The position numbers and the translations under genes were made by a program. This document shows positions 35,324 to 59,500 of a stretch of DNA of 64,000 bases, in pieces (the stretch's first letter is position 1; every line of letters starts with the position of its first letter). The stretch is from the NCBI GenBank assembly GCA_973895155.1, contig OZ316899.1:4777241-4841240 (forward strand), read 5' to 3'. The notes below the pieces were generated by a model. That model saw only the letters and a program-made list of their open reading frames with translations, was not told the DNA's origin and ran no database searches. The DNA is from Marsupella aquatica (lineage: Eukaryota > Plantae > Marchantiophyta).

Positions 35324-35655
35324 CACTATAGACACGCACTCAGCGCCCTGTCATTTTATTATGCAAGTGAAAAATACACTCCCTGTTAAGGATTTCACCC
35401 CCGACTGTACTTGCCAAAAGATGTAGCATAACATTCCAAAAAAACAAAAAAAACAAAAAATATAGGTGCCTGAGTCATGTACCTATTCTCAAGTGAATGA
35501 GACAAAATTCCTAAATGTTTGAGGGTGTCAACTCCTCCGCTGTCCTCACATGTACTGCCTCTGCACATACATCCATGACCATATCAGAGTCCAATCATGT
35601 ATAGTCATAGACACAGGTGCCAGGTGCGAGACCGGTGTGAGATGTCCTCATCTTA

Positions 35656-36189
35656 CTACCACATAAAATACGGATACCAATCCTGTTGTTGATGCCACTC
35701 AGCCCTGAGGTACTTAGGCATGTACATTAAGTCATCAAGGTCTAAACCCTGCTCATGCCATGGTGGTCTTTGATCCGTGCCTACAAGCAGTGGCAACAGT
35801 GCCCTCCACGGTGCACACGTTGCTACCAAGTCCCTCCACTGGGTACTAATTAGTCTATATTTTCAGATATCTTGTGCGACAGACATCACAAGAACCCTCG
35901 GCCAGACATGTGTAAGAACTATATCATCTGCCAAATCAGGCAACAAGGAACCACCTACAGCATCGTGCTTGTCTAACTCATCTGCTGAAAAGTAAATGTC
36001 CTCTTCGGACTGTGCATCCTCATTCACCACAGCATTCACAACACATCCAAGGTCTGCAGGCATTATCTCGGATGGAGCTACACTCTGTCTGGTTACCAAT
36101 CCACACATGTAAGCCCAAGTAGTAGCCATGCACGATGCAACCCGTAGGAGGACCCTACATAGGGCCTGTCGGTTTGGAAGAGGCAGCAT
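35656..36189 (-). pseudogene. F-box-like cargo gene of B1 (premature stop at 35863)
   Basis: Near-identical to 46644-47177; DIC changed to DI*. Confidence 0.8.
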
Positions 36190-36365
36190 ACCCACCAAAG
36201 TCTTCTGCCAAACAGAGCCCAGCAAGTAGATTCACAATCACACCCCACGCAACAGGAAACAACAATCACTTCAACTGCGACCAACCATGACAAGATGAGT
36301 TAGTTCAAGGATCACATTTATTACAAAATTGTGATTTATACAAAAATATGAGGGACTCCTACTCC

Positions 36366-37196
36366 TCACTCTCTCCCACCATTGCTAATCATACATCTCC
36401 GCTGAAGCTTGGAGGGCCAGGCCTCAAAAATACCAAAGTTCCAAGCATTCTGTTGCTTCCCTGTCGCTGTTGATTCCAGAAGCCAATCAGGGGAAAGCAC
36501 CCAAAGATTGTTGTTCATGACAAAATCACGCACTGTTGTCTTAAAGAATTTTCTGCATATTTTCATGTATGACAGACCTACAACATGAGTGGAGGTTTCT
36601 GTTAGACTCTCCTCCACTGTCCCACCTAGCTCAACAACTATGGACTTGTAGAGTCTGCACTTAGTCTCCCCAATTCCCTCTTCTGCAAATACCACACTAA
36701 ACCCCTTCATAATGGTATTTCTCTCCTTGCCATGCTCATTCAATATAGCATCTGCAGTCATAGGATGGTGTCCTATGTTGACAACAGGTCCATATTGGAC
36801 AGAAGCAAAGTTGGGTTTCTCTGCCGCTGCTTCATAGGCTTCCTAAAAGGCCTCCTCACTCTCCCACAATTCATATTGCTCAGTACTCTGTACACACCTA
36901 TGTTTAACAGAATCGGTCAACCAAGAGACTTCAACTACTTTTAGACCTTGGTTGGTAATGGCAGAATCAATGAAGGACCATGACCACTTGTTCATCACAT
37001 CCAGCCATGTCCCCGCAACAACATGTGTAGTCTGTGGAGTGATGTCCTTGACTTCAGTCCCATGGAACTCTGAGAATTGTTTTTGTACGATTGGCCAACT
37101 CACTTGGGTGAACCCATAGTGGCCAGGAATCAAAATGGCTTTGATTCCAGCCAATAGAGGCGGGTGGTCAACCTTTGTACATTTCCTAGAGGCCAT
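36366..37196 (-). pseudogene. Tandem-BRCT cargo gene of B1 (linker deletion creates an in-frame stop at 36843)
   Basis: ORFs 36843-37211 and 36366-36761 are in the same frame and match 47354-48202. Confidence 0.8.
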
Positions 37197-37625
37197 GTAC
37201 ACAGACCCCACCTAATCACTGCAGACCGGAAGATAATGCGTTCACCTGATAATCGGAGGGCCCCTAAAATGCTGCGTTTATAACTTGGTCCAGTCGAGTC
37301 GTCTGGTGAGTCTCTGCTCCGATTCCAAACGGGAGAAATATTGGGACAAATGTACTAGACACCTGCAAGGATGCACCTCATAGTTTGAATATGTGCCTTC
37401 ACAATATTGAAGGTGACAAGTGCAATTGTTTTGTGATGCCACATACAGATGTTGTAAATGGGCAGACATTCAATGAGAATACAAAATGTTGGTACACTTT
37501 AAGGGAATTCTCGCAATTTAAATAGCCTTGTAACTTATATGCTCATAATCAGAAGTCCTGATTTAATTTAAGCATTGTCATGTAAGTCGTGATCAAAATG
37601 ATTGCAGAGTTAAAAAAGTTCCTAG

Positions 37626-37784: not shown

Positions 37785-39225
37785 CTCCCCCTTGGTTGAT
37801 TTCAGTATAGCTAAAAATCAACCACACCAAGGGAAAGTTTAACCCGTATTGGTACCCATTTATTTGTGGTTTGGTCTCATCAAAACCCTTCTTCTTACTA
37901 TAAGGGAAAGAGTGCCACAACCATTACATGATATGGGGCCAAATATTTCTAAATGTCAGATATGTTATTCTAATGCAAACTGCACTAGTCTAGACTGAGT
38001 AATTTAAAGTTATTCAAAGTTGAATTTGAAGTCTATAAACGAACAGTTTTGTACTGCTAAGTATCATTTAATGTGGGCTTACACTTCGTGTGTATGTGTG
38101 TAAGGTAATTTTTTTTTGGGGGGGGGGGTTTGTAAAGTGTTGAGTCTGGCCGAAGGTCGCAGTGTGTTTCTCCCAACAGAGTGCTTCTTGGGTGGCAGGA
38201 TCGATCGGGTGGGGCTCCGTTTCATCTTTGCTGCATTGCCGTCTTGCATCGTTCGCTGCACTACACCGCTGCTTTGCATCGGGCCTCAACATCCTCGTCT
38301 TTCGCTATGGTTCTTCTTTCCTCTCGCTTTTCACATAAGTCGGCTGCCACAGCTCTGCTTACACTAGTAGAAACCGGGGGGTATTTAGACCCCATAAAAC
38401 AACTATTCAGTACCGTATAGGACTTGGAAACGACTGGGAAGGACTCCAGTCCTTTATAGGACTATGAGTCGTATGTTTTGTTACTATAATCAACTGAGTC
38501 CTTTATAGAACTGGTTTATAAGTCATTTTATAGACTGGATTTTCAGTCTATTGTAGTCTTTGTGTGGGTAGGTTTGGTGAGTCTTTTTCAGTCTTTTATG
38601 GACTGCGATGGTGAGTCATTGGGAACGACTCAAAAGGTTATGGAGGGTAGTCTTTAAGTATACTTTGTGGGTTTATAAAACGACTAAAGTAGACACTTTG
38701 TGGGGTATGTACAAGTCTTTCATGTCAACTGGAAATGAGTGATGAAGACCCCACTATACTACTTGGAATGAACTCACTCTTGTGCACAAATAACACATTC
38801 CATTCATGTTTTATTGTGTACTTGGAATGAACTCACTCTATAAGCTCACCATTCACCATGTTAACATTAGAACCTCACAAATTTTCAGAAAGCCATCTTC
38901 TATACCATGTACACTAATATGAATTCACAGATTCAAACATCATAGACTACAAAGAAGGTCACAAAGCATTCGTCTATACCATACACACTAATACTTAAAT
39001 GATACAAAACAGATTCAAGTATCATAGACAATCACCATAGAGCCATAGTTTGACATCAATCACTTGTTTCATATATACAGAATTCAGAAATATCAATGTC
39101 ACACACAACGGCTCCTTCATCCTCTTTACCAAATGGAAAAATTGGTACAGATATTTCTTGGATCTTTCCAAGGCACTGTCAAAATGTAACACATGTCACA
39201 TGATTCTATCTACACTTGCATTCAG

Positions 39226-42200
39226 TCACTGCAGACTAACACACTCTGATGGCCAGAGCACAAGAGATCCTACTGCATGTGCAATTATTTCCTGAGGTGG
39301 ATCATCGTCTCTATTCGGAAATGGCAAATTACAATCAGATACAATCACTGTAGTCAACAACACTACTACATGGTCATCCGGGACCACTTTGCCATGGAAT
39401 TTAGCATGATCCGGTCGCAAAATGCCTGTACCCACACATACCTGCGAGTCATCCTCCCATGATAGAAGATTATGGACTGGCTCTGCTGTGGCTATCACCT
39501 CCACCTTACCCTGGCTGCTTTTCTTGGCTTTCCTGGGTGGCTTATACATGACATTATTCATACCTTGGTTGCGAGTCATGACTTTGGCACAAGTGTTTTG
39601 TGCTGGTGATCGAGAATTGGATACACTCTTCTTCAAAGAATATGCATCCATATTTGACACTTCCAATTGTATAGCAAGATCTCCCTGCGATATCATCTCA
39701 GTATCTGCCAACATTGTACTTGCTTCAATTGAAGCATCTACAATCTTACTTGCATCCAATGTTGCTCCCAAGTTTCGACGTCGCTTCACCCTGCTCCCAC
39801 TTGGTTGAGAGTCTGTCAACTCTACATCAACTACTATTCAGTGCATTGTCCAACATAAGTGAATCACTCATCACATGTGCGCCATGTACATGTCACCAAC
39901 CACAAAGTTGTCACTATCTCCTTACCATTATGAACAGCCTTCTTCCCCTTCTTTACCATTGCCATATCCTCCATGTCTGCTTCTGCTGATCAATAAACAC
40001 ACCACAATATTCAGGTTCAATCTATTAACCACTGAATTGTTTCTCAACATTCATATAGAGGAATTTAAAGCATCAGCTTACCTGATACCTCCTTGACTAT
40101 GGTCACTGAGGCATTGGGCACATCTTTTTCATTATTTCTCTTTGAATCACCTGATACATCAATCATGATGTCACTTCAGATCCCAGTTGATCCAACCAGT
40201 TCTTACAGAAAAGATTACCTCCAACCGGCTTAAGCTTCACAAACTCCATGCACTTTTCAAATGATTCATACTGGATCATATTAGTAGGTTACTTGTCTCA
40301 GCAACCTTTTTGCCATTCTGCTTACTGATTATAGGGTCCTTCTCTGCCTCCACTCTTCCTGCATTCAAACCATTCACTTACTGATTACAGGGTCCTTCTC
40401 TGCCTCCACTCTTCCTGCATTAAAACCATTCACTCAATTCATGAAAACTTACTTCTAACATTTGAACATAGGACACAATGAACAATGGGCCGGTGTCATT
40501 TCCATACCTGTGTCAGATTTGCCAATTCCCTTTTTTGTTAACAAGGGCACACTTTGTACAATGTTGCCCTCATTGTTTGGTTGGGAACCACCCAATTTTT
40601 CAATCACAAGCTTGAAATTAGATTCCACTAATGCAAGAAGGTTCGCTACAGATGCCTCCACAATATCCAAACGATCAGCCAATTTACTTTCCACTCGAGG
40701 GAGTCCACACTCTAATGACTTCAACCGTTCACACATCTCTGTGAGAGTTGTAACAGTTCCCTGGCATAACACAGCTTACATATCTCAGATAATTGTCCCC
40801 AAGAACTGGTTGCTTACTTCCTACTACAATTCTTTCTGATGCTCAAGGGCAAATAGTCACAGAACATACAGAATTACAACATAATCACCTGTTTGGAAGT
40901 CACACTTGTCACCTCACTCCTTTGTTTCATGAACTCCTCTCTCACTTCTTGTGTTGATGGTTCTTCACCTGTCAATTTCTTCTGCAGTCCACATCAACAT
41001 ACATATGAATGAAACCAAGTGTTGATTGTCAATGAAAATGTAATAATGGTAGCAAGATGATAAGTTTGAGGCTTACTATCAGGCATGTCACTGCCTTACC
41101 AATTGTTCTTTCACTGGAGCATAACTTCCTCTCCCAGCCTGTGACAGGTGTTTCACTTTGCCTCGAGCATTTGACATCAATTCACTTTTGCTCTGTCCAG
41201 CCTCTGACATGAACCCTTTGATTAACCGTGTCCATTGATCCAATTCCAATGATGGGGGTGGTGGCATTCTCCTGTTAGAACCATTGTCTATCCACATCCT
41301 TTTCAACCTATGCCTCTCTTGTTTCAAAATCCTCATTGCATAATCTGATATGCAATCTTCAACTGGGCCCTTACCATCATTACCAACATAGTCCCACCTT
41401 TCAAGAATGTCCTTGCAGATAGCAGCCGAATCAGCTTTGTTCTGACTCCTAAACTCTGTAATGCTCAAATCTAACCAACGCAATACTTCTCCTCTTAGGT
41501 CAGAATGCCAACGGTTCTTACCATCACATGTGGGAGTTATCCAACCATCGGAATTCACTTCTACTTTACCAAATTTGTTACTGTCTCCTGCCTTGGTACT
41601 CCCTGAAGCGCTACTAGGTGTCCCTCCACGGCCTGGTGTCCCCCCACGGCCTGGGGTCCCTCCACGGCCTGATCTCCCCCCACGGCCTGGATTGCATTGT
41701 CCAAACCTCCCTGGAGTCCCTGCACATTTACAGGATCCATTAGGTAAGTATGAATCATAAATCCTGCTGCCAAATATACAGTGGACTTCAGAGCAATTCT
41801 GCAATGACCAAGTTACCTCTCCCTTGGCGCATAGATGGTTCTGGACCACCTGTCCTATTGCTTTGTCTTGATGAATTAGGGCCGTTTCTCCCGCCTGTGA
41901 ATGATTGCCTCCTATTTGAACGTGGATGGCCTTTGTTGTTTTCGTGATTGTCCCAATCAGAGTCTGCATACCAACAGGTACATGCCACACTCATGGACCT
42001 GTAAGATAAACTCTTTGCCCTAGCTACACATCAGATAAGTGCATATTGAGCTAAATCTCTACTACCATCACAAAATCACTAGCACAAGGCACTTACTTGT
42101 CCAATCATCCTCCTCACCTTTCCATTGCCCTCTGTACCCGTCTCTACCACGCTCTGGGTGTTCATATTCATCCCATCCATCTTCTGCTCCATCATAGTCA

Positions 42201-42439
42201 TCATCATAATTATCAGGCGTCCCTTGCCAATAACTCTGGCCCCTTCTAGGGTATGGATTATGTGATTTCTCTCTAGCTGCCCGCCTGCCTGGCACTTGAT
42301 GAGGGCCCTGTGCATCTTGCACAGGTGCATTTTTCTGTGAGCCCCCTGCATCTGGGTCTCCATCCATATCCAATCTTTCCTCTTCACCCCACTCTCCAAG
42401 CCCCATGTCTGTCTCCATGTCATCACCCTCTTCCCCCAT
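39226..42439 (-). CDS. TnpA-like multi-exon gene of B2 (ptta/Transposase_24-like middle, Tnp1-like C-terminus, GRGGTP repeats)
   Basis: Exonic ORFs 42068-42439, 41088-41990 (RHRLKRMW...PPP...DQWTRLI...KSELMSNARGK...GRGSY), 40455-40772 and 39226-39819 (FHGKVVPDDHVVV...LPFP...AVGSLVLWP). Exact splicing not resolved. Confidence 0.72.
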
Positions 42440-42616
42440 AGCTTCTGCACAGCACCCACAACCAAACAGGGAGAATCAGCACACTAAATTCAAAGTATCA
42501 ATCAATTTCATGCATATCCAACTATCCTAAACATCATTCCAGGCAGCAATTCCCGTTCTGTGACTCTGTGCAGGTAGTCATCCTCAACCTCATACTTGCC
42601 AATCGCCAGCTGTTGC

Positions 42617-45600
42617 CTATTGCAAATCATCAACCTCATCATATTCCATTTGCCCAGGTTCATCATATGTCTCTCTCAATGTTAAGGGGATGTAGTCAGT
42701 CCCTGCCCGAGTTGGAAGTACAGTCTCATGACTAGGATGCTCGAATGCAGCATGGTCATCCAAACTCAACTCTACTTTACTTCCATCCATCCGCCTGTTC
42801 CGTGCTTGGCTATGGCATACCACCCTCCAGCCATGTGACTCCTCCACATCTGCAAAGAAAGCCTGTTCAACTTGGCTAGGGAAAACAAAAGGCTCAGACC
42901 ATTCTGGTACTCTGGACCTAAAATTGGCCAACAAGAACCCATCATGATCACGCTTCATGGTGGCCCTTGGTCTCTGCCACTCTGATTTCACCCATGATCC
43001 CTTCATCAATATCACTGGGACACTTGTGTTACCATAATTCAACACCCAAATGTCGGTCAACTCCCCCACGTAACCCATCTTCATCCACCCCCTCTGTTCT
43101 TCAGAGGTTCTCTGCTCAAACACAGAAATCAAACCACAATCATATGATACACAATGGTCACCCTGCTCATCCCTCACTCGATAATGATTTCCATAAGCTC
43201 TCATCCGTTTGTAGGTCAGAATAGACAATCGTGGTGGCACAGATAGAAGATACAAATCCTTCTCCATATCTGGGTGATGTCTACTATGCTCTCGAATTGT
43301 CACCCGAATCCACTGCTCGAACTGTGGGAAGGGATCCTGTTGCCCAGAGTGTGCAGCTTTTTGCATATCATATTCCCTGCAATATGAGGTACAGGCATAG
43401 TTAGGTCTAAACAACACATGACAACCTAAGATCACCCTTGGAATAGACAAGAAGCATCACAACAAAGGCAAGTCAATTCAATCACTCACCTCCACCATGG
43501 TTGCATAGGCTCTGTGTTTGCCAGCACATATGAATGAGCCTTGTCTCGAATCGCAACAGGCAGCTGAACAGCACGTCCCACACCTTCAACAACCTCGCCA
43601 CTCACTCCATCATCTTCACCAGATTTCCAAACTCTTGTCATAGCTTCACCAGACCCAGCCATGTACTCTGTTAGGAATCCCAACGTCTCATCCTTAATGT
43701 ACCCCAATGCCATGGAAGCCTCTGGCCTGTAGTATGTTCTCACATGACCTTTCAACAACTTCATGTATCGCTCCATAGGGTACATCCATCTGGTACTGAC
43801 TGGCCCATACTGCCCTAGCTCTTCTACCACATGGATTAGGAGATGAGTCATAACATCAAAGAAAGCAGGGGGGAAGTATATCTCCAAGTCATAGAGGACA
43901 TAAGCAGCATCCTGCTTCAACTGCTCCAATCCTTGGGGATCCCACACTTTCACACATATACGGCGAAATACATTGCACAGTCAAAGAATGACATTACGGA
44001 CTGGTTTCTGCATGAGACCTCTGAGGCATAGGGGCAGAATGTGCTGCATCAACACATGGTAGTCATGTGTTTTCATACTGCCAAGTTTATTCTTTGTAAT
44101 ATGCTTCTTGAAGGCACCAGCATAGCCAGAGGGCACTTTCAGACAGCTCAATCTATACAAGAATGTCTTCCATTCATCCCGTGTGCACACATAGGGAGCT
44201 TGGAACTTGAGAAGTACATTGGGATTGCTTGCATGGGGCTTCAACCAAAGGTGAGGGCGAATCCCCTTCTATTGCATATCAGCTCGAACTGCTCCTGTAT
44301 CTTTCTCACCCGACAAGAACTTCAGCAAGCTCTCACAAATATTTTTCTCAATGTGCATGACGTCCACATTGTGTTTGTTGGGCTCGAATTCCTGCACTCC
44401 ACAAAGCAAAGAATTCAACAATAGAAACACTAATTAACCACAGAGGAGGATTGTAACCAACATCAATCCACCATTGCTCCAATCTAAAATTGCAATCATA
44501 CAGGGGCTGGAGGCTAAGTACATTACCCTCCAGTACTCCAACTCCAAGTCCATCAAGGTCTGTCTTTTCACACCGTGTTTCACCACTGGATCCTCAGGTT
44601 CTCGATCAGTGGCACTTCTCTTGTCCCAATCAGCCTTCCTGGCTGCCCACCTCAGGACTTGCTCTCTGGTGACCCTCTATGGTGGGCCACGAAGCTCTGT
44701 TTTGTTGTTGAAGTGTGCAATTTGAGACCGTGTGTGCCTGTAAGGATGATCAACAGGCAGATACCTTCTATGCCCCTGAAATTTCATACTGTGCAGGGCA
44801 TGCAACCACTCACTTGTCACATTTTTCCCACATGGTGTGCACCCCACATAGCCCTTTGTCACTCGTCCAGATATGATGCCATGGCCTGGGTAATCTGCTA
44901 TATCCAGCAAACAAATTGCATGCAGTCTAAAGGGGCTGGGTTGAAGAAGCCCCTTCAGAACATCATGGGTTAACACCCCTTCTATCCACAAAGTCTTCCA
45001 CTCTTCCACTGCTGGAGCCAACATGATATCTATGAATTGCTCGGTCACAGAAGCTGGTCCAGGGATTAACAGCACCATCATGACAAAAAACCTCTTTGTA
45101 GTCATCCATGGGGGAAGGTTGTAATTTAGCAGCGTAACCGGCCAACATGAATAACGGTTGTTTTTGTCTCCAAATGGGTTTACTCCATCCAGTGATAGAC
45201 CAAATCGAAAGTTCCGCTTCTCTGCAGCAAACTGTGGCCACCTCTCATCAACAAATTTCCAATGGTTGGAATCTCCAATGTGACGCTGCAGGCCATCACT
45301 GCTCTTGTTATCAGGAGTCCATGTCATCAGCTTGGAAATGGCAGGGCATCTAAACAGACGTTGTAGTCTAGGAATGAGAGGAAAATGACGAAGAACCTTG
45401 GCAGGGTGTGTACATTTCCCTACATTCTTGTACCTGTGCTTACCACAATGAGGGCATGTCAATTTATCTGCATGCTCTTTGCGAAAGAGAACACACCCAT
45501 CAGGGCATGCGTCAATAGACACATAGTTTAGCCCAAGGTTAGACATCAATTTCCTAGCCTCGTACATATTTTTTGGAATTGAATTACCATCTGGTAACAC

Positions 45601-46317
45601 ATTTTGGCGCAGGAAGGTCAACAACTCTGTCACAAATATATTGGGAACATTGTGATTGCCACAGATGTTCAACAACAACACGACAAAACCCAGCTTGGAG
45701 CAGTTCGACCCCTCGTAGATAGGAATGCAAGCTTCTTTGATGTGTTTTGGGCCCCCAAACACCCACTCCCTCTCTGCTGCACCTTCCCCAATGTCAAAGT
45801 CAGGTTCAGCTTGGCCGTCGCCAATGTGTGGCTGCGGTTCATTGTCCTCTTCTGATTCCACTGTGTCGTAAAAAGCATCAAGGTCTTAAAAAATCTCTTG
45901 AACCATTCTTGGGACATCCATCCCACCGTCCTCAGTGATTGCCTCTGCATCTCCATCTTGGTCATCCACGTTCTCATGTTGGACCCCAGGACCATCCTCT
46001 GCACAGTCTATGTCCTGCTCTACGTAGTCTCTACGCCTAGCTGTATTAGAATCCACAAAGTCAGCTCTCCACTCTTCATCAGAGGAGTCTTCTTCTGCTG
46101 GTACATTCCAAACCCTCCACCGAGGGTGCCTTTCATGCCGCAGCAGGTGAAGGTGCACAGTGTTCAAACTCAACGACTTGAATCCTTGGCACTGTGTGCA
46201 TGGGCATCTCATCCTCCTACTCCTACCTTGGGCGGCCCGGGCTTGTTCACGCATCCACAATTTAGAATCATGATGCCTAATCCTAAATGGGTTGTGAAGA
46301 GGCAACCTTGGAGCCAT
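42617..46317 (-). pseudogene. CACTA TnpD-like transposase of B2 (Transpos_assoc, Transposase_21, DUF4218 and DUF4216-like regions) with in-frame stops
   Basis: MAPRL...RCPCTQC; intron 44526-44392 joins EYWR to EFEPNKHNVDVMHIEKN; FPPAFFDVMTHLLIH...GPV..RWMYPMER. Stops at 45886, 44677, ~44270 and 43981. Confidence 0.93.
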
Positions 46318-46643
46318 CACTATACACACACACTCAGCACCCTGTCATTTTATTATGCAAGTGAAAAATACACTTCCTGTTAAGGATTTCACCCCCGACT
46401 GTACTTGCCAAAATACGTAACGTTCCAAAAAAACAAAAAAACAAAAAATATAGGTGCCTGAGTCATGTACCTATTCTCAAGTGAATGAGACAAAATTCCT
46501 AAATGTTTGAGGGTGTCAACTCCTCCGCTGTCCTCACATGTACTGCCTCTGCACGTACATCCATGACCATATCAGAGTCCAATCATGTATAGTCATAGAC
46601 ACAGGTGCCAGGTGCGAGACCGGTGTGAGATGTCCTCATCTTA

Positions 46644-47177
46644 CTACCACATCAAATACGGATACCAATCCTGTTGTCGATGCCACTCAGCCCTGAGGTA
46701 CTCAGGCATGTACATTAAGTCATCAAGGTCTAAACCCTGCTCATGCCATGGTGGTCTTCGATCCGTGCCTACAAGCAGTGGCAGCAGTGCCCTCCATGGT
46801 GCACATGTTGCTACCAAGTCCCTCCACTGGGTACTAATTAGTCTATATTTGCAGATATCTTGTGCGCCAGACACCACAAGAACCCTCGGCCAGACATGTG
46901 TAAGAACTATATCATCTGCCAAATCAGGCAACAAGGAACCACCTACAGCATCGTGCTTGTCTAACTCATCTGCTGAAAAGTAAATGTCCTCTTCCGACTG
47001 TGCATCCTCATTCACCACAGCATTCACAACACATCCAAGGTCTGCAGGCATTATCTCGGATGGAGCTACACTCTGTCTGGTTACCAATCCACACAAGTAA
47101 GCCCAAGCAGTAGCCATGCACGATGCAACCCGTAGGAGGACCCTACATAGGGCCTGACGGTCTGGGAGAGGCAGCAT
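46644..47177 (-). CDS. CACTA cargo: F-box-like protein, 177 aa, intact
   Basis: LLPDLADDIVLTHVWPRV...KYRLISTQWRDLV fits the F-box pattern. Start MLPLPD aligns with MSIFPD in element A. Confidence 0.72.
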   Translation of the reverse strand: MLPLPDRQALCRVLLRVASCMATAWAYLCGLVTRQSVAPSEIMPADLGCVVNAVVNEDAQSEEDIYFSADELDKHDAVGGSLLPDLADDIVLTHVWPRVLVVSGAQDICKYRLISTQWRDLVATCAPWRALLPLLVGTDRRPPWHEQGLDLDDLMYMPEYLRAEWHRQQDWYPYLMW

Positions 47178-47353
47178 ACCCACCAAAGTCTTCAGCCAAA
47201 CAGAGCCCAGCAAGTAGATTCACAATCACACCCCACGCAGCAGGAAACAACAATCACTTCAACTGCGACCAACCATGACAAGATGAGTTAGTTCAAGGAT
47301 CATATTTATTACAAAATTGTGATTTATACAAAAATATGAGGGACTCCTACTCC

Positions 47354-48202
47354 TCACTCTCTCCCACCTTTGCTAAGCATACATCTCCGCTGAATCTTGG
47401 AGGGCCAGGCCTCAAAAATATCAAAGTCCCAAGCATTCTGTCGCTTCCCTCTAGCTGTTGATTCCAGAAGCCAATCAGGGGAAAGCACCCAAAGATTGTT
47501 GTTCATGACAAAATCATGCACTATTGTCTTAAAGAATTTTCTGCATATCTTCATGTATGACAGACCTACAACATGAGTGGAGGTTTCTGTTAGACTCTCT
47601 TCCACTGTCCCACCTAGCTCAACAACTATGGACTTGTACAGTCTGCACTTAGTCTCCCCAATTCCTTCTTCTGCAAATACCACACTGAACCCCTTCATAA
47701 TGGTATTTCTCTCCTTGCCATGCTCATTCAATATAGCATCTGCACGCATAGGATGGTGTCCTATGTTGACAACAGGTCCATATTGGACAGAAGCAAAGTT
47801 GGGTTTCTCTGCCGCTGCTTCATAGGCTTCCTTTTCAGCCAAAGCCTCTGCAGTGGCCTCCTCACTCTCCCACAACTCATATTGCTCAATACTCTGTACA
47901 CACCTATGTTTAACAGAATCAGTCAACCAAGAGACTTCAACTACTTTTAGACCTTGGTTGGTAATGGCAGAATCAACGAAGGACCATGACCACTTGTTCA
48001 TCACATCCAGCCATGTCCCCGCAACAACATGTGTAGTCTGTGGAGTGATGTCCTTGACTTCAGTCCCATGGAACTCTGAAAATTGTTTTTGTACGATTGG
48101 CCAACTCACTTGGGTGAACCCATAGTGGCCAGGAATCAAAATGGCTTTGATTCCAGCCAACAGAGGCGGGTGGTCAACCTTTGTACGTTTCCTAGAGGCC
48201 AT
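47354..48202 (-). CDS. CACTA cargo: tandem BRCT-domain protein, ~282 aa, intact
   Basis: Two repeats: G.V.....TTHVV...KVVEVSWLTDS and GG.V.....STHVV...WVLSPDWLLES. Basic N-terminus MASRKRTK. Confidence 0.85.
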   Translation of the reverse strand: MASRKRTKVDHPPLLAGIKAILIPGHYGFTQVSWPIVQKQFSEFHGTEVKDITPQTTHVVAGTWLDVMNKWSWSFVDSAITNQGLKVVEVSWLTDSVKHRCVQSIEQYELWESEEATAEALAEKEAYEAAAEKPNFASVQYGPVVNIGHHPMRADAILNEHGKERNTIMKGFSVVFAEEGIGETKCRLYKSIVVELGGTVEESLTETSTHVVGLSYMKICRKFFKTIVHDFVMNNNLWVLSPDWLLESTARGKRQNAWDFDIFEAWPSKIQRRCMLSKGGRE

Positions 48203-48797
48203 GTACACACGGGCCACCTAATCACTGCAGACCGGAAGATAATGCGTTCACCTGATAATCGGAGGGCCCTTAAAATGCTGCATTTATAACTTGGTCCAGT
48301 CCAGTCGTCTGGTGAGTCTCTGCTCCAATTCCAAACGGGAGAAATATTGGGACAAACGTACTAGACACCTGCAAGCATGCACCTCATAGTTTTAATATGT
48401 GCCTTCACAATATTGAAGGTGACAAGTGCAATTGTTTTGTGATGCCACATACAGATGTTGTAAATGGGCAGACATTCAATGAGAATACAAAATGTTGGTA
48501 CACTTTAAGGGAATTTTTGCAAATTAAATAGCCTTGTAACTTATATGCTCATAATGAGAAGTCCTGATTTAATTTAAGCAGTGCCATCTTAGTCGTGATC
48601 AAAATGATTGCAGAGTTAAAAAAGGTCCTAGAAGGCTTAAGGGGAGTTTTTGAAGGCATGTACCCAGGAACAAGTAATGAACTTAGGGTACTTGTTGCCT
48701 AAGCATCCTCTCCTACAGAGGTCCTTCTCAAAATTGGAATGTCTGCAATCTCCAAGGTATCCACATCAGGTGCACTATGCATGTACATTATTCAGGT

Positions 48798-49478
48798 TCA
48801 AAGCCAAGAAATGTGATCTCTAATGGGAGTGTGCAAAGTAGGATCTATGGCATGGCAATGACAATAGAAGATCCATCGATCAACACCATGTGCAGAGTGA
48901 TCATAGATGTGTCTGTCACAAGCATAGCCTTCTGCTTGACGCTCCTTCAAACAATGAAAGTGCCACATGGTGGGACACCTAACACAGTGGACTATGTCCA
49001 CCCAGAAATCTTCATCGTGCTGACCACATGCCTTGCACTTATGAAGTGGGCAAGCTGTGGCAAGATCGGGCAAACATGAAAAACAAAAGAACCTCACACA
49101 ATATCTGTCAGGGCATTTCCTAACAAGTGGTGGAGCATCAACAGAGCCCTCATAAGACCCCAACTTCCCACATTGTGCACACTTAGCCTGCTTCTCCAAA
49201 CAATCAGTGCACATCCAGCCTCCCTGGTGTGCTGACGGGAGGCCCACCCCTGGACAGTTGTTTTTTGCAGCAAGGTCAGACTCCGGGTTGAGGTGGAAAT
49301 GCCTCATGCAAGGGCCCTCACATATGGCTAAGCCCCCACCATCGTCACAAATGGCACAACAATGAGCTGCCTTCTGGAAAATCTGACTTGCAGAGAAGTT
49401 ACTACCATCTGGCCCAACTACACCTGTGTTGCTCACCTCTGTCCCCCGCTTCTTGGCTCAGATTTTAGGGCGTGCCAT
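48798..49478 (-). pseudogene. CACTA cargo: EDM2-like composite PHD protein (single TGA at codon 7, probably CGA>TGA)
   Basis: ATG at 49478 gives MARPKI*AKKRG in frame with CAICDDGGGLAICEGPCMRHFH...CTDC...CAQCGKLGS...CPLHKCKAC...CVRCPTMWHFHCL...RWIFYCHCHAIDPTLHTPIRDHISW. Confidence 0.88.
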
Positions 49479-50145
49479 GCCTACGCATGAGACAGATAGT
49501 ACAATTTAGCAGAGTGCATAGACATTACAATTTAGCAATGTACAAAAAGTACAGTGTAGCATATAGACTAGAGTGGCAATTGCTACTGCAATGAAATGTT
49601 CACACACATGTGCAGAGTAGACATACTTTTTGGTTTGTTGAGCCCACTCTGAAAACTGATCCCCTAGTACAATAGCTCCACCTACACCTCAATTTTGTGG
49701 CTATGATTCACCAAAGGAGATCTGCAACAAGATTTAATGCATTTGAATCACATACAATAGTCGTGACATGTAAAACAGGCATTTTTTGAACAGGATTGGT
49801 ATCAAGCAGTGTGATCAGGGTTGTAATTTATACATCCTAAATAGGCTATGATAGTGAATGAGACAAATAAGTTAGGCATAAATCACTTTTTCCAGGTTAT
49901 CACATGGCCCATTAATTCCAGTCTTTGAAAGGAGACTTTTAAGTGAGCTTGCTAGCCTCTTAAATTAGGATATTGTACTTAGTGCAGCCATAATAGGATA
50001 AGTTATGTACTGTTGACCCTAAACCCTGGACCCAAAATTGCTCATAATTCAAAATTTTAAGTAAATATCCTCTCTGTTCAAGTCAGAGTGTTAAGTTATA
50101 GGTCAATGGTCTCTGGTCTGTGCATGCGGTGAGACAAGTTGTCCT

Positions 50146-50595
50146 CTAGAGCGTGTGATCCAAACATGTGTAGACACCAAAGGCACCGGTGTTGGGGTCT
50201 GGGAGGGCAGGACAAGTGACATTGCCAGGCACACTGCAGGATGGCGAGTGGTTCCAGATGATACATTGTGCTCTGTGCAAAAACCGACATCCAAGAGAAC
50301 GGTCATCCAACTCTGGGCCAGAAGCCCTACAGGCAGGACAGTCATATTGGCAACTATGCACACACCCTTGGCACCTAATTTGTGGTGGGTCATGTACAAG
50401 AGACACAAATACCAAGGATGTCGGGAAGGGTACTGAAGCAGGTAGAGGCCGCCTGTAGTTGTTCCTGGCAAGAACAGAGTACTCAAAGTACCATGCAGAC
50501 TGGGCTGGAAGGATCCCCAGTCTGACATACTCAAGGTGCAACATCTCTGCCTTGCGTGCAAACCGCACATGTTCAGCATTGCGGGTCCTCACCAT
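50146..50595 (-). CDS. CACTA cargo: 149-aa Cys/His-rich 'MVRTR' protein, intact
   Basis: Full-length homologue of 23803-24255 in the same cassette position. Confidence 0.75.
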   Translation of the reverse strand: MVRTRNAEHVRFARKAEMLHLEYVRLGILPAQSAWYFEYSVLARNNYRRPLPASVPFPTSLVFVSLVHDPPQIRCQGCVHSCQYDCPACRASGPELDDRSLGCRFLHRAQCIIWNHSPSCSVPGNVTCPALPDPNTGAFGVYTCLDHTL

Positions 50596-52539
50596 AAGTG
50601 TTGCTTTTGTTGTGATGTCCTCTGTTCACGTCCTTTGATGAGCAAGGCGAGCAAGAGGTCGACTTGCCTTGCCCACAGCAACCAACCTGCACTTATCAGT
50701 TCCCACTCACTAAATTGGTTCCAACTACATATTTCATGCTGAGTTCCTAAGACCAAGAGCATGTATATAAAACCATGTTCCCTATGGACATGTACATAAA
50801 TCATATTTGGATCCTGTTTTTTCATCCAGAAAGATCGAAAGTCTCACCTTGCAGGTTGCAGCAAAGAGAAAACTCACTGGTTGTCGTGTTCTGCAAGTGA
50901 ACCTCCACTGAGGTGGCAGAAAGCAGACAAAGCTTCAGGAAGATGGGAAAGAAAAAAAACTGCTCACAAGCTCAATTCATCCATGGCCCAGTTCAAGGCA
51001 AGACAGGCTAAAACATTCACAAAGAGTCAACTCTACACTTGGTTGTCCATATCAAAATGCAGCACACACCCTTCGCTTGCTATCCACACTATACTGACAT
51101 GATCTGATCTGATCTGATCATGGTGTTCAGATGCCTGCGCTCCTGATGTGCACAACAAAGCACAGAGAGCAACAAAACTCCAGCAAAGTGGGACTCAAGC
51201 AAGAGATATGAATTTCAGGCAGTAGCAAAATCAAATGAAGTCAGATGCTACATAGCAATTAAGCACAAAGGCTACTTCATGTCTTTTTACATAGAATTTT
51301 GGATTGAAGTAATACCAAAATTGTGTTATCGGAAATTGTTCTACAAACGAATATCTAAAAGCAGGAACTATGACGGAACACACAACAATCAACAGGAGCA
51401 TTCAATGCAGCACAACAGAGAAACAATGTACTACCAATGAAATGAAATACCAAAATTTAATACCAATTAACAGACTTAGCAGTTACAAGCTCCGACAGCA
51501 ACATACTGGCAAGAATAGCAAAGCAAACGACTGAGCAGTTGAGAAAAAAAGCACAATGAACAATGGTAACCTTCCCTGTCTCCTCTCCAAATCTAAAACG
51601 GCCGGGCAGAAATACAGACTTGTCAGTCAATGTGAAATTATACATGGACAAGAAACAACAAATACAAACTGCTATGCTGAGGCCACATGAAGCAACAATG
51701 CGAAGAGCAACTTAAAGAAAAGGGACCAGAGGATCAAACATAGCAGGATATATGGTGCCGGTGGGTAATATATGGGGTTTCAGTAGACTTGGGGCCAGTT
51801 TGAGGAGGATTAAGAAGCGCGCACCCCACGTTCTTGGGTGGTGGTTGGATGGGGTTTTGTTTGATTGAAGAAGAAATCACCATTCTCTTCTGGACGACTT
51901 AAACAAAATTCCAGGAAACAGTGGACGGGACAACAAGGCATGTAATAGAGAACCAGATGTAACAAGGCAATTTGCTTGTCTCACAAATAAACCTGACCAG
52001 ATTTCTAAAGGAATTTTGCAAGACTGTACGCGTGCTCACAGCGCAGGGCAAATCAAACCACCAAATGCAGTAGAAGGAAAGCCCAAACTAGGACAAGTCA
52101 AACAAACCTGATAGGAAGAAACATGGACGTGAATGATAACAAACAAAAGACAGAAGACAAACAATAAGCTAAACTCTCACATGAGAAATGTGCAGCAGAA
52201 GGTAGGTTCAGAGCTTCACATTGGGCTACAAAAATGGAGAAACAGAGCTGAATGGGAACCTCGGCCACGACAACTTTGGAAGAAGCAATGAAGATCTTAC
52301 GTTGAAGCCAAAATCAAAGGCAATTCATGTCTTAGCTTGGAATTTCCACTTCCCACAAAAGGACAGAGGACAACATCGAAAAGCCCACTCGAAAGCTGAA
52401 CACTAGAACACTGGAACACACTCAAACAGGTTTTGCAGGGATGGCTCTCTATCAGATCGGCTAGAGAATCAGGCAGGCTTCCTATTACGGTCTGCTCAGA
52501 GCCTTACACTCTGGATTAGACTCTGAATCCAAACGCGAG

Positions 52540-53110
52540 TCTACGCTTTCCGTTGCTGGTCACAGCGATGGGCAATCAGGATGATGCCATGCCGAGTAGA
52601 AGAACAAGAAAGCATTCCATAAAAGGCACTGAGATGAACCGTATAGTAAAAGTGGTAGTACAAACCCACCCGCAAGCTGAATGTAGAGGATAGAGATAGA
52701 GAAAATCACCGGGGCAATGAAGTCGGATCACAGGGTGCAAAACTAGTACTCAACAGGGTAAGACCAATCACAGCAAACAAAGCACAGAGCTAGACCACCA
52801 AAACTCCAGCAAGACAGTGTCATGTCCATTTATTTGTAGGGAATGAAGTCGGATCGCAGAGTGTAAAACTAGTACTCAGTAGGGTAAGACAGATCACAAC
52901 AAACAAAGCTAACACAACAAAGCACATAGAGGAACAAAACTCCAGCAAGACATAAATCAGACCTCGCAGCTTTTTGACTAGCAAGGGTCTACGCTTTCCA
53001 TTGCTGGTCACAGCGCGACGGGCAATCAAGATGATGCCATGCCGAGTAGAAGAACAACAAAGCATTCTATAAAAAGCACTGAGGTTGGCGTTATAGTAAA
53101 AGTGGTAGTA
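52540..53110 (+). repeat. A-B-B-A arrangement of two direct repeats (~120 bp and ~100 bp) in the B2 leader
   Basis: ctacgctttcc...gtaaaagtggtagta at ~52540 and ~52989; aatgaagtcggatc...aaaactccagcaagaca at ~52716 and ~52842. Confidence 0.8.
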
Positions 53111-55249
53111 CTTCCAGTAGCGCGACCAACTCGCTAAGTGACAGTCCGGAGTAGCTTACCTCCGAGAAGAAAGCCAGAGCAGTTTAGCAGAAATCCCCAA
53201 GAAAATCCCCACTCTGAAGATGGTAAGCTTGCAGTTGCTCCCCCGGGTGCTCCCCTCAACCTCGCCACTTCTATTCTGAGCAACGCAGGTCTTCTCCACC
53301 CTCTCACCTTGCACCTACTGAACAGGTGACCAGCACTATCCACTCCCACCGCAACTGTGGACGGTCCCTAAAAAAATGCAGATGACAGCGACCAATAGAC
53401 AAAGGATTACAGGCGTAGACCTGGCAGAAATCTTCTTCCGAAAAGCTTTCCTCAGCCCGATTCCTGTGCACATCAGAAAAAACTCAAACCATTTAGAAAT
53501 GAGATCACAGATTACTCTTGACAATCTCAAAAATGCCACAACCTAAGCACTCATAGCTCCGTCCCCCCATTCTAATTTCTCTGACGAGTTTGCCTTAAAG
53601 CACATCCACTCGCGGTTCAAGCAGATTCAGAATCATCATAGACAATAGAGTGTTCCACCATAGCCCACGGTAGGTCCACGGCCATCATAACCAACCCTCA
53701 CACCCAGCTCCCTCAGTACCCGCAGCTCCGCCCAGCTCTGCGCCTACCGGGATTTATTAGTATTTCTCACTTTTAAGAAGGGCAGTTTTCTCAAAAGCAG
53801 TCTAATTGCCTAGACGACACTAGAAAAGTTGGAGGCAATATCACAGCGGAGCATTCTGCGTCTAAGGGCCAGCGACAAGTTGCAAAGGTGGGTTAACCTC
53901 GTTCTGAGTCAAGACTGCAAGCTTTAGATCCAGTCATTCCGCGATTCCTTAAAGAAAAACCCGTGATGGACATGCAATGTTGTGCTACTGCAATGAACAG
54001 AGTAAGGCAATGCAGTGGTCATCGTAGCTATGAAGAAGAAATGGTAGTGGAAAGTCTAGCTCAAACAATGGAGTGTATGAATCAGCGCTCAAGAAGGTCA
54101 CCTGAAAGTTGCGCGTACAGCTTGAAGATGGAGCAGCCCAATCAGCTTCCAATCGATGAGCAGCGAGCACAACTCCACTGTGAGTAGACTGTCTTTGCAA
54201 TGCCTCCGCGAGCTTAAGGAGCCACTACAGTCCACCTTTCGCAACAATCGCCTTCCGCATGGATCGCCTTCCTCAGCGATTTCCTTCCGTAGTCCACCTT
54301 CCGCAGGAGCATGCAGGTCCACCTTCCGCAGCAGCAGGTTGGTCACTTGTGGATTAGTCAAACTTGGAACCTTAGCTCTCCTCCCACCAAACTCCCACCA
54401 CTGTCTGACCACACAAGCTTTGGTCCGCAACCGCAATGGCGCACAACTCCTCCCCTCAGCTAAACCCTCAGCGCCTCAGTCCCCAGATCACAGCTCCTCT
54501 CGGACTGCAACTCACTGAAAATGTAAGCACTCAGGACTGCCCTTGACAATGTTGCCGTTGTGCTACACATTGCCCTTTCGCAGCCACAACCTTCTTCGCC
54601 CTACCAGCACAACCCTCTTCGCCCTACCTCACATTACGCGCGGGAAGGGAAGTCTGCAATCATCGCAAAAGTGGGCAACATGAAAAAGAACCCTACGTAA
54701 AACCCCGAACCTTGGACCCCTCACGTTCTAAGTCCAATGACGATGGCCCGAACACTCCAAAGTCACTCCCAAAGTGAAGTTTAGTGCCTCTTTACCAAAT
54801 TAGGGGACTTAAGTCATTAAGGGGAGCCTTACCGTTTGAGTGAGCCGTTGAGTGTCACCCAAAGTGAGACACCACTACAAAGTGTTACTGCATGGCCATC
54901 TTGGATATGTTACTGATTTTTCTTGGCTTGGAAAACTTCAATAAAGCGGGATCATGCTAGCCCAAAAATCTTGGGTATGCGTGCACACCGGTTCTTGGCT
55001 TGGCAAACTTGAATAGAATGGGATGTTGGTGAAGCCCAGCACCCTTTGGAAAACCCCAAACGCCCGACCCAGGACCCCACCCCCTTGCTTAGGCCACCAA
55101 GTAATCAATGAGATTCTCCCATGCCCACAAGTTAAGCGTTAACCCACGCCCTTAAACTTGATTAGGGTAAGAAGGCCCTTACCGTTGGGGTGTGAAGTTG
55201 ACCACAACGACTCTAAATGTGAAGCATGAGCCCCTCACCCCGTGAAGAT

Positions 55250-55500
55250 GTAACCCCCCCCCCCCCACGCTTGACATATAAACCCCCCTAAACCCCATTT
55301 AGTGACCCCCCACACCCTTGACATATAACCGGCACACCCTTGAGATATAAATCCCCTTTATTGACCCCCACCCCCAAGTTGTATCCAAACCGACTCACCC
55401 TTGACATATAAACCCCCCTAAACCCCTTTAGTGGTGACCCCCCACACCCTTCACATATAACCGGCCCACCCTTGAGACGTAAACCCCCCCTAAACCCACT
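55250..55500 (+). repeat. C-rich 130-bp duplication with recurring CCCTTGACATATAA motif near the 5' TIR of B2
   Basis: ttgacatataaaccccccctaaacccc at 55271 and 55401. Confidence 0.8.
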
Positions 55501-56162
55501 ATGGAGTATATGAGACATTAGGGCATTTAGACATTTACTGAGTTTGTACGTGTTCAATATAGCGGGACGTAAAGTCCCCCCATATGGCCATTATCAAATT
55601 AAAGTTGACAACTAAACCCTACAACCATCATGTGTGAGAGTGTTCACCCTTTCACAAACTAGGGTACGTGGAAACTTTTGATAGTCTTATCCTAAACCAA
55701 AAAGCACTCACAGTCTTTTGTAGTGTTCATGTGAACCGGTGCAATGGTTTTGAGTCATTTGAAGTTGCAAAAAAGGACTTAGTGGCCTTAGTCCTATAAG
55801 GTTTGGTCTAAATTGCCCCGGTTTCTACTAGTGTTAGTTGGTCCCACAGAAGACGGTGAATTTGGACCAACTTAAATCTGAGGATTGTGTCGAGTAGCCC
55901 AGTGAGATTCAAGATTTTAAGATCAAGAATGTATCCGCTTTTCCTCCCTTTCCCTCCGATTCATTTCGCATTGTTAATTCCTTGTCTTTGATTCTATAGT
56001 TGACTAGAGGAGGTACGGGAGTCGTTTCAAGCCGCAGGGTGATTGTTGTTGGTTGACGTTGGTTCTATTGTGCCGAGGGGTCGCAATGGTGCGCTTTTTT
56101 GGAGGGCTCTGCATATTTTTGATAAGTACTTTTGTCTCCTCCTTTGCTGGTTATGCTGATTC

Positions 56163-59100
56163 TTATCGTAAGAAATCTCTCAACTGGCGCATTCCTATTC
56201 CCAATGAGTGTTCTTTATGAAGTGCAGGGGGTAAGGGTTTCATGAATGTATCAACTCTGTTTTCCTTTGTTGATATCCACTGAACCTGGATCTTGTCTCC
56301 ATGTTGCTCATGTGTGTAGAATAGCTTCGGTGCTATGTGCTTTATCTTGTCTCCCTTGATAAAGCCTTGTGTGATTTGGTCCACACGGGGTTTGTTGTCT
56401 TCATAAAGAATAGTAGGCTTGTCCAGCAATGGTTTACCTGTGCTCTGGTTGATGTGGTCAATTAAACTTCGGAGCCATACACACCCGCATACACATTCTC
56501 TTGTTGCTTCATATAATGCAATGATTTCAGCATGGTTAGACGATGTAGCTGTTAATGATTGTTTCATGCTCTTCCAGGAAATCGCTGTGGTTCCTTGCAG
56601 GAAAACGTATCCCGTCTGGGACTTCGCATCGTCTGGGTCGGACAAGTAGCTGGCATCCGCATATCCTGTGAGGGTCGGGTTTGCATTCTTGGGGAAGAAT
56701 AGTCCCATATCCATAGTCCCCTGTAAGTACCTGAATACTCGTTTTATTCCGTTCCAGTGCCTAATTGTTGGCTGTGATCCGTGTCGTGCAAGGAGGCTTA
56801 CCGCAAAGCTTATGTCAGGTCTTGTCTGTTTGCCAGGTACAGTAATGCTCCAATCGCTGAAAGGTAGGGCTTCTCAGGTCCCAGTACCTGCTCATGTTCT
56901 TGGCATTTCTTGAACATGTCCTTTGCTGGATCAAGTGAACGCAGGTCCATTGGAGTGCTCACGGGATGGGAATTCTGCATGTTGAATTGCTTGAGAATTT
57001 TCTTTGTGTAAGTAGACTGATTAATGAGAATGCCTTTATCAAGGTGATTGAACTGAATGCCTAAGCAATAGCTCGGTATTCCAATATCTTTCATTTCGAA
57101 TACTCTTTTAAGTGTTGAGATTGTCTGTTTTGTTAACTGCTTTGTGCCGAAGATATTAATATCATCTACGTAAATTGCAAGTATTACAAACTCTGTGCCA
57201 AGCTTCTTAAGGAATAAGCAAGGCGCAATTTCTGCATTTGTAAATTGTAAAGCTAGCATTTCATCACGAAAGCGTTTGTACCAGATGCGGCCGCTCTGTT
57301 TCAAGCCGTTTATGGATCTCATTACCTGTACTGCATATGTTGGTTGCTTTCTGTGTTTATTCAACTGTTTGGGTGGAAGAAGTCCATGCTCTTTTGGGGA
57401 TGAATCTCCCTGGTTGTTTTGGTACCATTTTAAGGTCTCAGTTGGAGTAGCCTTTTCTTTTAACTCAGCAGTAGGCTGGTTTGCTTTAAGATGTATCCCA
57501 TGGGTATTGCGGACTGTAGGTCCGTTTTTACATTTTTCAGTAATCTGCTTAATCCCTGATTGTAGATCTGGGTGTAAGCTGTTTTTCTCCCCTTGAATAT
57601 GGAACTGTACTCTTGTGATTAGTTCAGGGGGTGCCTGCATATATATTTCAGTGTCCATAATGCCATACAAGTATGCCGTCACTACGTCTATCAAGTGCAT
57701 TACAAGGTTATAAGTCAATGCAAATGCAATCATGTAGCGGTATGTTATGGAGTCCATGATAGGCGAATAAGTCAGGTCGTAGTCTCTGCCATAAATCTGT
57801 ATATCATTTGGCCACCAATCGAGCTTTGTATCGGATGACCTCTCCTTTGGCATTCCTTTTTCATACAAAGATGAATTTGTATCCCGTTAAGCTCATGTCA
57901 GGTGGGGCCTTCTATATTGGGCCAAAAATGTGTTGTTTGATTAATGAGTCTAGCTCCGAGTTGATTGCTTCCTGCCATAGTGGGCAGTCGTCTCGGTTCT
58001 GTGCCTCCTGGACAGTCAGTGGATCTGGGGCTTCGTTAGTAATTTCTTGTGCGATTAATGAGATAAATTGGTCTCTGGTGTGTGCTCGCTGCCACACTTT
58101 TCCAGTATGCATATACTGGATGGAGATCTCCTCATTATCCTGTGATAGGTTTGTCTCCGGTCCTTTGGTATTCCTATTTTCATTCTGTATCCCAGTGTTG
58201 GGGTTTGAGTTCTTCTTTTGCCTGGGTCTTATATCTTTGGATCCGAGGGGGCGGCCCCTTTTAGCTCTAGGTGGGGCCTCTACTGCTTCGGTTTGCTGCG
58301 GTTGGATTCATGCAGGTACATTTGCAGCTTCGATGTGGGAATGAGTTACAGCAAGCAGCGTCGTTGAATGCATCTGGTAAAGTATTCAGCATTTGGTTTA
58401 AATGTAAAACACGTCTTACCTCTTCATCTGCTTGCCTCATCCTTGGGTCGTTAAGCAGTAAGTCTTTTGTTTCCCATTGTAACTGTGAGACTCTTACTGA
58501 GTCTTCTTGCTTGCCAGATGTGAGGTGTGGATAGATGTTTTCAAAGAAGTGGCAATCCTGGAATCTCGCTTTGTAAACATCTCCCATTGTCGGTTCTAAG
58601 AACCTTATAATAGATGGGGAGTCGAAGCCTACATAAATCCCTATTTGGCGTTGGGGACCCATCTTGGTTTGTTTAGGGCCCAAGATGGGTACTAAGACTT
58701 GGCATCCAAATGTTTTTAGGTGGGATAGATATGGCGGTAATCCATATGCAAGGTGATGGGGAGAGAGGGAGTTAAAGGATGAGGGCCTATACTGTAGGAG
58801 GGATGCTGCATGGAGGATGGCATGTCCCCATGCCGTCGCTGGTAATTTAGTTTGCATTAACATTGGGCGTGCGATAAGCTATAATCGTTTGATGACAGAC
58901 TCTGCCATTCCATTTTGTGAATGGACATATGGGACAGGGTACTGAGCTTCTATCCCAGCTGTGATACAGAAGTCATCGAATGTATTAGAGGTAAATTTGC
59001 CTGCTCCGTCTACTCGCAGTATGCGGATGGGATTTTCCGGGAACTGAGTCCTCAACTTCAGTATATTTACAAGGATTCGTGAAAATACTAGGTTTCTTGT

Positions 59101-59500
59101 GGATAGCAGCGACACTTGTGACCATTTAGATGATGAGTCAATCATAACTAGAAAAAATCTAAATGGGCCACTAGGTGGTTCAATGGGGCCACAGACATCA
59201 ACATTCAGGTGTTCTAAAAATTTGGGGATTGCATAGACTGTCTTTGTGATTGTTGGGCGTGTGATAAGCTTACTTTGTGAGCATGCAATGCAGGGTTGTT
59301 GTTGTGCAGGTGTTTTTGCTACTGGTGGGATTCCCACTAAATCTTTTATAATTTTCTGGTACATTGTCGTACCTGGGTGTCCCAGCCGGTTATGCCAAGT
59401 GATGAATATACTTTGTTTGCTAGGTTCAGTATAATGTGATTGTATTCTGGTGACATATAATCCTGGTGGTTTGGCTGAGAATGTTTCTTGGATCTGTAAT
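56163..59500 (-). pseudogene. Copia pol: pre-integrase, integrase, RT and RNase H (frameshifts and stops)
   Basis: WHNRLGHP, CIAC, VDVCGP, RVDGAG, QNGMAE, GLKQSGRIW, YVDD, GYADASY, AEIIAL, YEDN. Confidence 0.95.

Follow-up and report, generated by a model that had tools for sequence, protein, structure and literature searches.

A stretch of 64,000 nucleotides from Marsupella aquatica (Marchantiophyta; assembly GCA_973895155.1, contig OZ316899.1, positions 4,777,241 to 4,841,240 of the forward strand), referred to here as the window, contains a CACTA-type DNA transposon, element B2, that carries four intronless open reading frames (ORFs) on the minus strand (46644-50595), upstream of its TnpD transposase gene and a TnpA-like gene. 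The predicted products are a Cys/His-rich protein of zinc type (ORF1), a PHD-finger protein, a tandem-BRCT protein and an F-box-like protein. We consider it probable that a CACTA lineage maintains these as a modular accessory set of up to four intronless genes, acting as a host-interface kit. That the genes are selected, element-borne accessory genes and not Pack-type debris we hold with high confidence. The analysis covered the one window and a dozen short foreign contigs.

What is new is a conserved modular set (putative histone reader, tandem BRCT, F-box-like adaptor and zinc-type ORF1) that is under selection in several deep CACTA lineages and is almost absent from public protein sets. To our knowledge very few plant transposon-encoded proteins acting on host chromatin are known, VANC of VANDAL being the main case.

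Accessory genes and structure of element B2

An earlier note on this DNA had described four compact ORFs preceding the transposase on the same strand, and both the coordinates and the Pfam matches agree with that description. The first, ORF1 (50146-50595, minus strand; 149 aa), is intact in B2 and Cys/His-rich. Its five homologues share nine invariant Cys/His and 49 invariant columns, including the motif C-x-H-x-C-x3-C-x2-C, and the N-terminus MVRTR (positions 50595-50581 in B2) is invariant in all five, so that after removal of Met each of them carries the H3-tail/PAF15-type pattern [AV]-R-T-[KR]. ORF1 gave no match in Pfam or the protein atlas and chance matches only in a profile search of the PDB, and hhalign found it unrelated to the PHD family.

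The PHD gene (48798-49478, minus strand; about 226 aa) starts at the ATG at 49478, not at the GTG listed at 49436. In single-sequence Pfam searches it matched PHD-1st_NSD, PHD_NSD and PHDvar_NSD with E-values of 5e-5 to 4e-3, just under the cut-offs (23.7 versus 27). A family profile matched NSD3 (2e-9) and NSD2 (2e-8) over 140-185 positions that span PHD1-PHD3, and also AIRE PHD1 (1.4e-4, finger 1). The predicted product is accordingly described here as an NSD-type triple-PHD module with three putative NSD-type fingers; the earlier label of EDM2-like is conjectural. The N-termini of PHD proteins in the window are themselves H3-tail-like, MARTKHK in a second element, A (25306-25335), and MARPK in B2 (49478-49440). 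Some copies start MAR(T/C/P)K, a feature that is not kept across the PHD family.

The tandem-BRCT gene (47354-48202, minus strand; 282 aa) matched PF00533 in two stretches with 52.8 bits (cut-off 21.3), and the family profile matched PARP4, BRCA1, REV1, TopBP1/Rad4, Rtt107 and both Lig4 repeats. Origin from Pol lambda is not favoured, its match (1.6e-3) ranking behind those of PARP4, BRCA1, REV1 and TopBP1. The canonical phosphoserine pocket, as in BRCA1 (Ser-Gly after strand 1 and Lys in helix 2 of repeat 1), was mapped by hand onto the family alignment; on that mapping the Gly and the Lys/Arg are kept and the Ser position is occupied by Pro or Asp. The fourth gene, F-box-like (46644-47177, minus strand; 177 aa), has a weak Pfam F-box match in B2. 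Two of the three family members match F-box or F-box-like models in the same region, the best E-value being 0.0011 (in a homologue), with PF12937 at 0.017.

No motif common to the upstream regions of all five genes was found, only an 8-mer downstream of three stops. This 8-mer, CAATTTTG, follows the stops of ORF1, PHD and BRCT at a distance of 50-110 nt (about 50040-50060, 48710-48730 and 47300-47320) and is found again after the PHD stop (about 885-895) in contig L002, which has a copy from another sample. The 8-mer may serve as a 3'-end signal; in AT-rich DNA it may also have arisen by chance.

Element B2 itself (38362-55833, minus strand; 17,472 bp) ends in perfect 18-bp terminal inverted repeats (TIRs; CACTAGTAGAAACCGGGG at 38362 and, inverted, at 55833; 18/20 match) and has the 3-bp target-site duplication (TSD) TTA on both flanks. 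A CACTA/G-type TIR start, a 3-bp TSD and a TnpD-type transposase, three of the marks of a CACTA/En-Spm element, are thus present. The transposase gene, now decayed, occupies 42620-46317 (minus strand) and retains the Pfam domains Transpos_assoc, Transposase_21, DUF4218 and DUF4216 (Transposase_21, PF02992, E=1.1e-57; PF13960, E=7.7e-26; also PF13952 and PF13963, with a further match at 2e-5); Transpos_assoc begins at 46317, directly after the F-box-like gene. Beyond it lie the TnpA-like ORF (41091-41990, minus strand), with a weak match to Transposase_24 (PF03004; E=0.022 in B2 and 2e-4 in its homologue on the metagenome contig L004, both under the cut-off), and a 3'-proximal ORF (39229-39837, minus strand) that is kept in L004 (tblastn, 38% identity to L004 12273-12572). 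Close to the 3' end of B2 are three subterminal 16-bp palindromes of the AGTCCTTTATAGGACT type (38409-38512, unstranded). Palindromes of this type match 11 times in the window versus 0.5 expected, all of them at the 3' ends of B2 and of a related copy, B1. An Rfam scan of B2 gave no match.

Since it has TIRs, the TTA duplication and transposase genes, B2 is therefore a structurally complete, autonomous-type CACTA transposon of 17.5 kb, and the four ORFs are additional to the canonical TnpD/TnpA pair. The earlier note had called B2 complete, which is right for its structure (TIRs, TSD) and wrong for its coding capacity: codon 7 of the PHD gene is an in-frame TGA (49460-49458), and two in-frame stops interrupt the transposase frame. 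All other PHD copies aligned from public runs read G at 49460 (CGA).

Selection on the genes and decay of the copies

Element A carries homologues of three of the B2 genes on the opposite strand. These are ORF1 (23803-24255, plus strand; 150 aa, intact), with 44% aa identity to B2 ORF1, a frameshifted PHD gene (25306-25961, plus strand; start MARTKHK) and an F-box-like gene recognized by homology to B2, which has a frameshift and an in-frame stop (26557-27083, plus strand). Identity to B2 is 34-43% for PHD (25306/25376-25958) and 38-67% for the F-box-like protein (26542-27080). The order, ORF1, PHD and F-box-like, is that of B2, as had been noted before. BRCT is missing; a remnant of it was sought in A and none was found. 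Element A meets the end of B1 at 27378, roughly where its transposase would begin, and neither its own ends nor its transposase were found within the window.

Alignment of A and B at the DNA level is confined to the coding parts and to one 56-nt block after the F-box stop, and comparison of the 5' regions by tblastx and blastn gave nothing in common. The earlier observation that the proteins align while most of the intergenic DNA does not is thereby sustained. The ratio of nonsynonymous to synonymous substitution (omega, or dN/dS) was estimated in pairwise comparisons with bootstrap intervals. For PHD it was 0.23 (0.15-0.34) between B2 and L002 and, in the C-terminal part, 0.25 (0.12-0.52) between B2 and A; between B2 and A it was 0.29 (0.16-0.52) for the F-box-like gene and 0.57 (0.37-0.86) for ORF1. 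The values from A against B are thus below 1 and not near 1. Between B2 and L002 the PHD coding sequence is 84% identical and gap-free, versus 53-69% identity with gaps in the flanks, and the differences fall 25/27/57 over the three codon positions.

Constraint is also seen at greater distance. The PHD and BRCT genes of L004 are full-length ORFs with the same start and end as those of B2 at saturated synonymous sites; by our own arithmetic the chance of about 270 codons staying open at saturation is about 2e-6. The start Met and the stop position are conserved among the homologues of each family. These comparisons show the accessory genes to be subject to purifying selection in the active lineage, with neutral decay once a copy has inserted. 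The earlier note had argued for selection on the element for these genes as opposed to random captures, and the omega values (0.23-0.29 for PHD and F-box-like, 0.57 for ORF1, all intervals below 1) bear it out.

The 56-nt block lies in B2 between the F-box stop and the transposase start (46547-46602, minus strand), with copies in A (27108-27163, plus strand, by alignment to B2) and, after the F-box stop, in B1 (35559-35614). It is 89-91% identical between A and B, versus about 74% for coding DNA, and folds as an imperfect hairpin (-23.6 kcal/mol, z -1.96). This non-coding hairpin is absent from L004 and from another contig, L005. Lying ahead of the transposase, the hairpin could act as a regulatory or binding site.

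Element B1 (27378-37625, minus strand) is an older copy, 96.5% identical to B2 (38362-48631) over 10.3 kb, which is truncated in the BRCT-PHD spacer and carries broken BRCT, F-box-like and TnpD genes. Divergence of B1 from B2 is the same in coding and non-coding DNA (3.0%), the differences are spread over all codon positions, and omega is 0.42-0.47 with intervals reaching 1. In element A, ORF1 is the sole intact gene. CpG observed/expected is 0.26-0.36 (0.26 in the cassette). Stops, frameshifts, low CpG and the even divergence of B1 and B2 are all found, so the copies in the window are decaying relics. B2 has C/G where B1 has T/A at 132 of their differences and the reverse holds at 64, a bias suggestive of heavier methyl-cytosine deamination in the older element, B1.

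Other repeats surround these elements. Upstream of the A genes are tandem arrays of an approximately 704-bp repeat (13874-15172 and 17804-19713; at least five units, 79-98% alike). A Copia-type retrotransposon with gag, integrase, reverse transcriptase and RNase H (56163-63532, minus strand) directly adjoins B2, and 2.6 kb of its interior (59501-62161) is 90% identical to 9230-11811, the latter region having short repeats of 13, 20 and 33 bp at 11067-11523. For the idea that B1 was split by this Copia element with B2 in its long terminal repeat, a matching repeat was sought at the window end and not found.

Linkage to CACTA transposases in other contigs

The accessory genes adjoin CACTA transposases in independent contigs from other samples, which upholds the linkage to CACTA that had been proposed. 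The 13.4-kb contig L004 has PHD, BRCT, TnpD and a TnpA-like gene in this order on one strand. Its BRCT and PHD genes are both intact, with 27% and 38-41% identity to those of B2, and no remnant of the F-box-like gene or ORF1 was found in it. Contigs L005 and L006, from a different study, have BRCT followed by TnpD. For further contigs, gene listings alone give a PHDvar_NSD protein followed by BRCT in one case and BRCT followed by proteins of 63, 158 and 265 aa in a second, while another listing of the same kind has the F-box-like gene followed by proteins of 43 and 463 aa.

Among the contexts seen the order is constant, and the genes always stand immediately ahead of TnpD. The number of genes varies by lineage, being four in B, three in A, two in L004 and at least one in L005. 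The earlier description of a conserved cassette therefore stands as to order and selection and falls as to a fixed set: the cassette is modular, with 4, 3, 2 or 1 genes by lineage.

Relatives are scarce in public protein collections, with two for ORF1, two for the F-box-like protein (51-56% identity) and five for PHD, none having an informative name. For BRCT there were only 15 at E<=1e-3 among 1.84 billion representatives, again none informatively named. Scanning metagenomes with the PHD alignment yielded no relative, and no host parent gene was found. In the runs of two organisms the cassette is covered by thousands of contigs, a sign of high copy number, and coverage is denser over ORF1, PHD and F-box-like than over the spacers. 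Over BRCT (47306-48211), the two richest runs have a summed contig depth three- to eight-fold below that over the other three genes, which fits an abundant BRCT-less subfamily such as A.

A BRCT relative of 266 aa (P0028; L008 1-2628, also L009-L012), with about 32% identity over 100 aa, occurs in environmental contigs, where its neighbour is a chlorophyll a/b-binding gene and no transposase was seen. This relative may belong to a photosynthetic eukaryote, as a host gene or a domesticated copy.

Proposed role and comparison with known systems

As a host-interface kit, the accessory genes would allow the element to be expressed and to move even where chromatin is silenced. Docking on histone H3 tails would fall to the PHD module, the BRCT pair might serve as an adaptor to host phospho-signalling or repair proteins, and the F-box-like protein could be an adaptor to an SCF ubiquitin ligase. 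Once its Met is removed, ORF1 would expose VRTR, a free N-terminus resembling those of H3 and PAF15, for binding by a PHD finger. Counter-silencing or host manipulation is a serious though tentative candidate for the main role; for the anti-silencing function put forward in the earlier note, we go no further than to infer it. A more specific form is improbable, namely an undescribed counter-silencing system in which VRTR acts as decoy or substrate, the F-box-like protein hands a silencing factor to SCF and BRCT provides a link to phospho-signalling. The PHD finger targeted by VRTR would then belong either to the NSD-type PHD protein that the element encodes or to a UHRF1/ORTH-type host reader of maintenance methylation, and methylation or H3K9-type silencing would be lifted from cognate elements.

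Several observations weigh against the host-interface reading. Every copy in the window is inactivated, and ORF1, at its omega, appears only moderately constrained. The F-box assignment in B2 is below the family threshold (PF00646, 13.3 bits with a cut-off of 20.5; E=0.08-0.1), a PDB profile search with the F-box-like protein gave chance matches only, and the models that AlphaFold gave for ORF1 and the F-box-like protein, at a mean pLDDT (predicted local distance difference test) of 36, were not used. The outside contigs leave the taxonomic breadth unclear. The runs listed include none recorded as RNA, and they showed no joints of splice-like form (the runs may be DNA). Finally, counter-silencing and a function in repair or target choice are not separated by the present evidence, and both are live.

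The latter, help with repair or targeting of transposition as the main role, is plausible if somewhat doubtful. On this account the cassette would mainly aid transposition, with PHD tethering the transpososome to preferred chromatin, BRCT steering double-strand break repair at the excision site, and the F-box-like protein tuning the turnover of a repair or cell-cycle factor. The accessory genes are immediately upstream of TnpD in every context seen, the BRCT profile is one of repair-type domains (BRCA1, REV1, TopBP1/Rad4, Rtt107, Lig4, Pol lambda), and BRCT is the gene that most consistently adjoins TnpD in the distant lineages L004 and L005. Nevertheless BRCT is dispensable in the lineage of element A, and the hand alignment has Pro or Asp in place of the Ser of its phosphoserine pocket.

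A reading of the ORFs as exons of a single, alternatively spliced transposon gene, and not as four genes, is unlikely, even though En/Spm offers a precedent (PMC13547354), spacers are short (177 bp between BRCT and F-box-like, 327 bp between F-box-like and TnpD) and in both B2 and L002 an AG dinucleotide closely precedes the PHD start codon. Against such splicing, every homologue of each family has a conserved Met start and a conserved stop, AATAAA follows the BRCT stop, and joints that skip ORFs and have splice-site ends were not seen in the runs, which may be DNA. Very unlikely is passive cargo, that is, host genes captured once (Pack-type or by retroposition) and hitchhiking without function for the element: PHD and BRCT are host-type domains, an intronless form would suit retro-copies, gene content differs between lineages and all copies in the window are broken, but omega is well below 1 for PHD and F-box-like, other lineages have full-length intact ORFs at 27-50% identity, start and stop positions are conserved, and TnpD and the TnpA-like gene are retained, unlike in Pack elements.

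If functional, the genes would be clonable candidates for the means by which DNA transposons of early-diverging land plants withstand silencing or manage the repair of their own excision breaks. Their parts have counterparts elsewhere. The PHD protein has the three-finger arrangement of NSD1-3 PHD1-PHD3 (profile match to NSD3 and NSD2); unlike NSD proteins and EDM2, it is a free-standing protein of about 226 aa that has no SET, PWWP or methyltransferase-like domain. PHD fingers of the EDM2 type are reported to occur widely among eukaryotes and to bind H3 tails (PMC3632883). The UHRF1 PHD finger binds PAF15 and DPPA3, and the VRTK of PAF15 docks in it as the ARTK of H3 does (PMC7060239). The MVRTR start of ORF1 resembles the MVRTK start of PAF15; the likeness is confined to five residues, ORF1 being otherwise dissimilar, and docking by its N-terminus is hypothetical. 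Polerovirus P0 is a comparable case of a small viral F-box-like host-manipulation protein with a minimal F-box-like motif and lacking a recognisable substrate-binding domain, carried, as here, by a genetic parasite. The F-box-like protein of B2 has no homology to P0, and its SKP1 binding is putative.

At the level of whole elements, Pack-CACTA and Pack-MULE transposons are non-autonomous and hold fragmentary, mostly decaying captures (PMC13317346). B2 shares with them host-type domains inside a TIR element and, unlike them, has full-length ORFs, omega of 0.23-0.57 with intervals below 1, a conserved gene order and transposase genes. In maize En/Spm, TnpA to TnpD share a leader, and there are Arabidopsis EN/SPM families with two tandem genes, TnpD and TnpA (PMC13547354). 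B2 is like an autonomous En/Spm element in its CACTA TIRs, 3-bp TSD, subterminal repeats, Transposase_21/DUF4218/DUF4216 transposase and downstream TnpA-like gene; unlike En/Spm, it has up to four more conserved genes between the 5' subterminal region and TnpD. Accessory genes of this kind are not described for En/Spm in the literature searched, in which no paper combined CACTA with BRCT, PHD and F-box, in accord with the earlier view that the cassette is undescribed.

Accessory, fast-evolving, host-contacting transposon proteins have precedents in Arabidopsis (PMC13547354, PMC5735166), where VANDAL Mutator-like elements encode the anti-silencing protein VANC, a sequence-specific DNA binder (PMC5735166, PMC10398659). 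Unlike VANC, the products described here belong to another transposon superfamily, have no sequence relation to it and are putative histone-reader, BRCT and F-box-type adaptors. Like VANDAL elements, those of the B2 lineage are DNA transposons in which lineage-specific, fast-evolving accessory genes are kept alongside the transposase, and VANDAL is the best precedent for counter-silencing encoded by the element itself.

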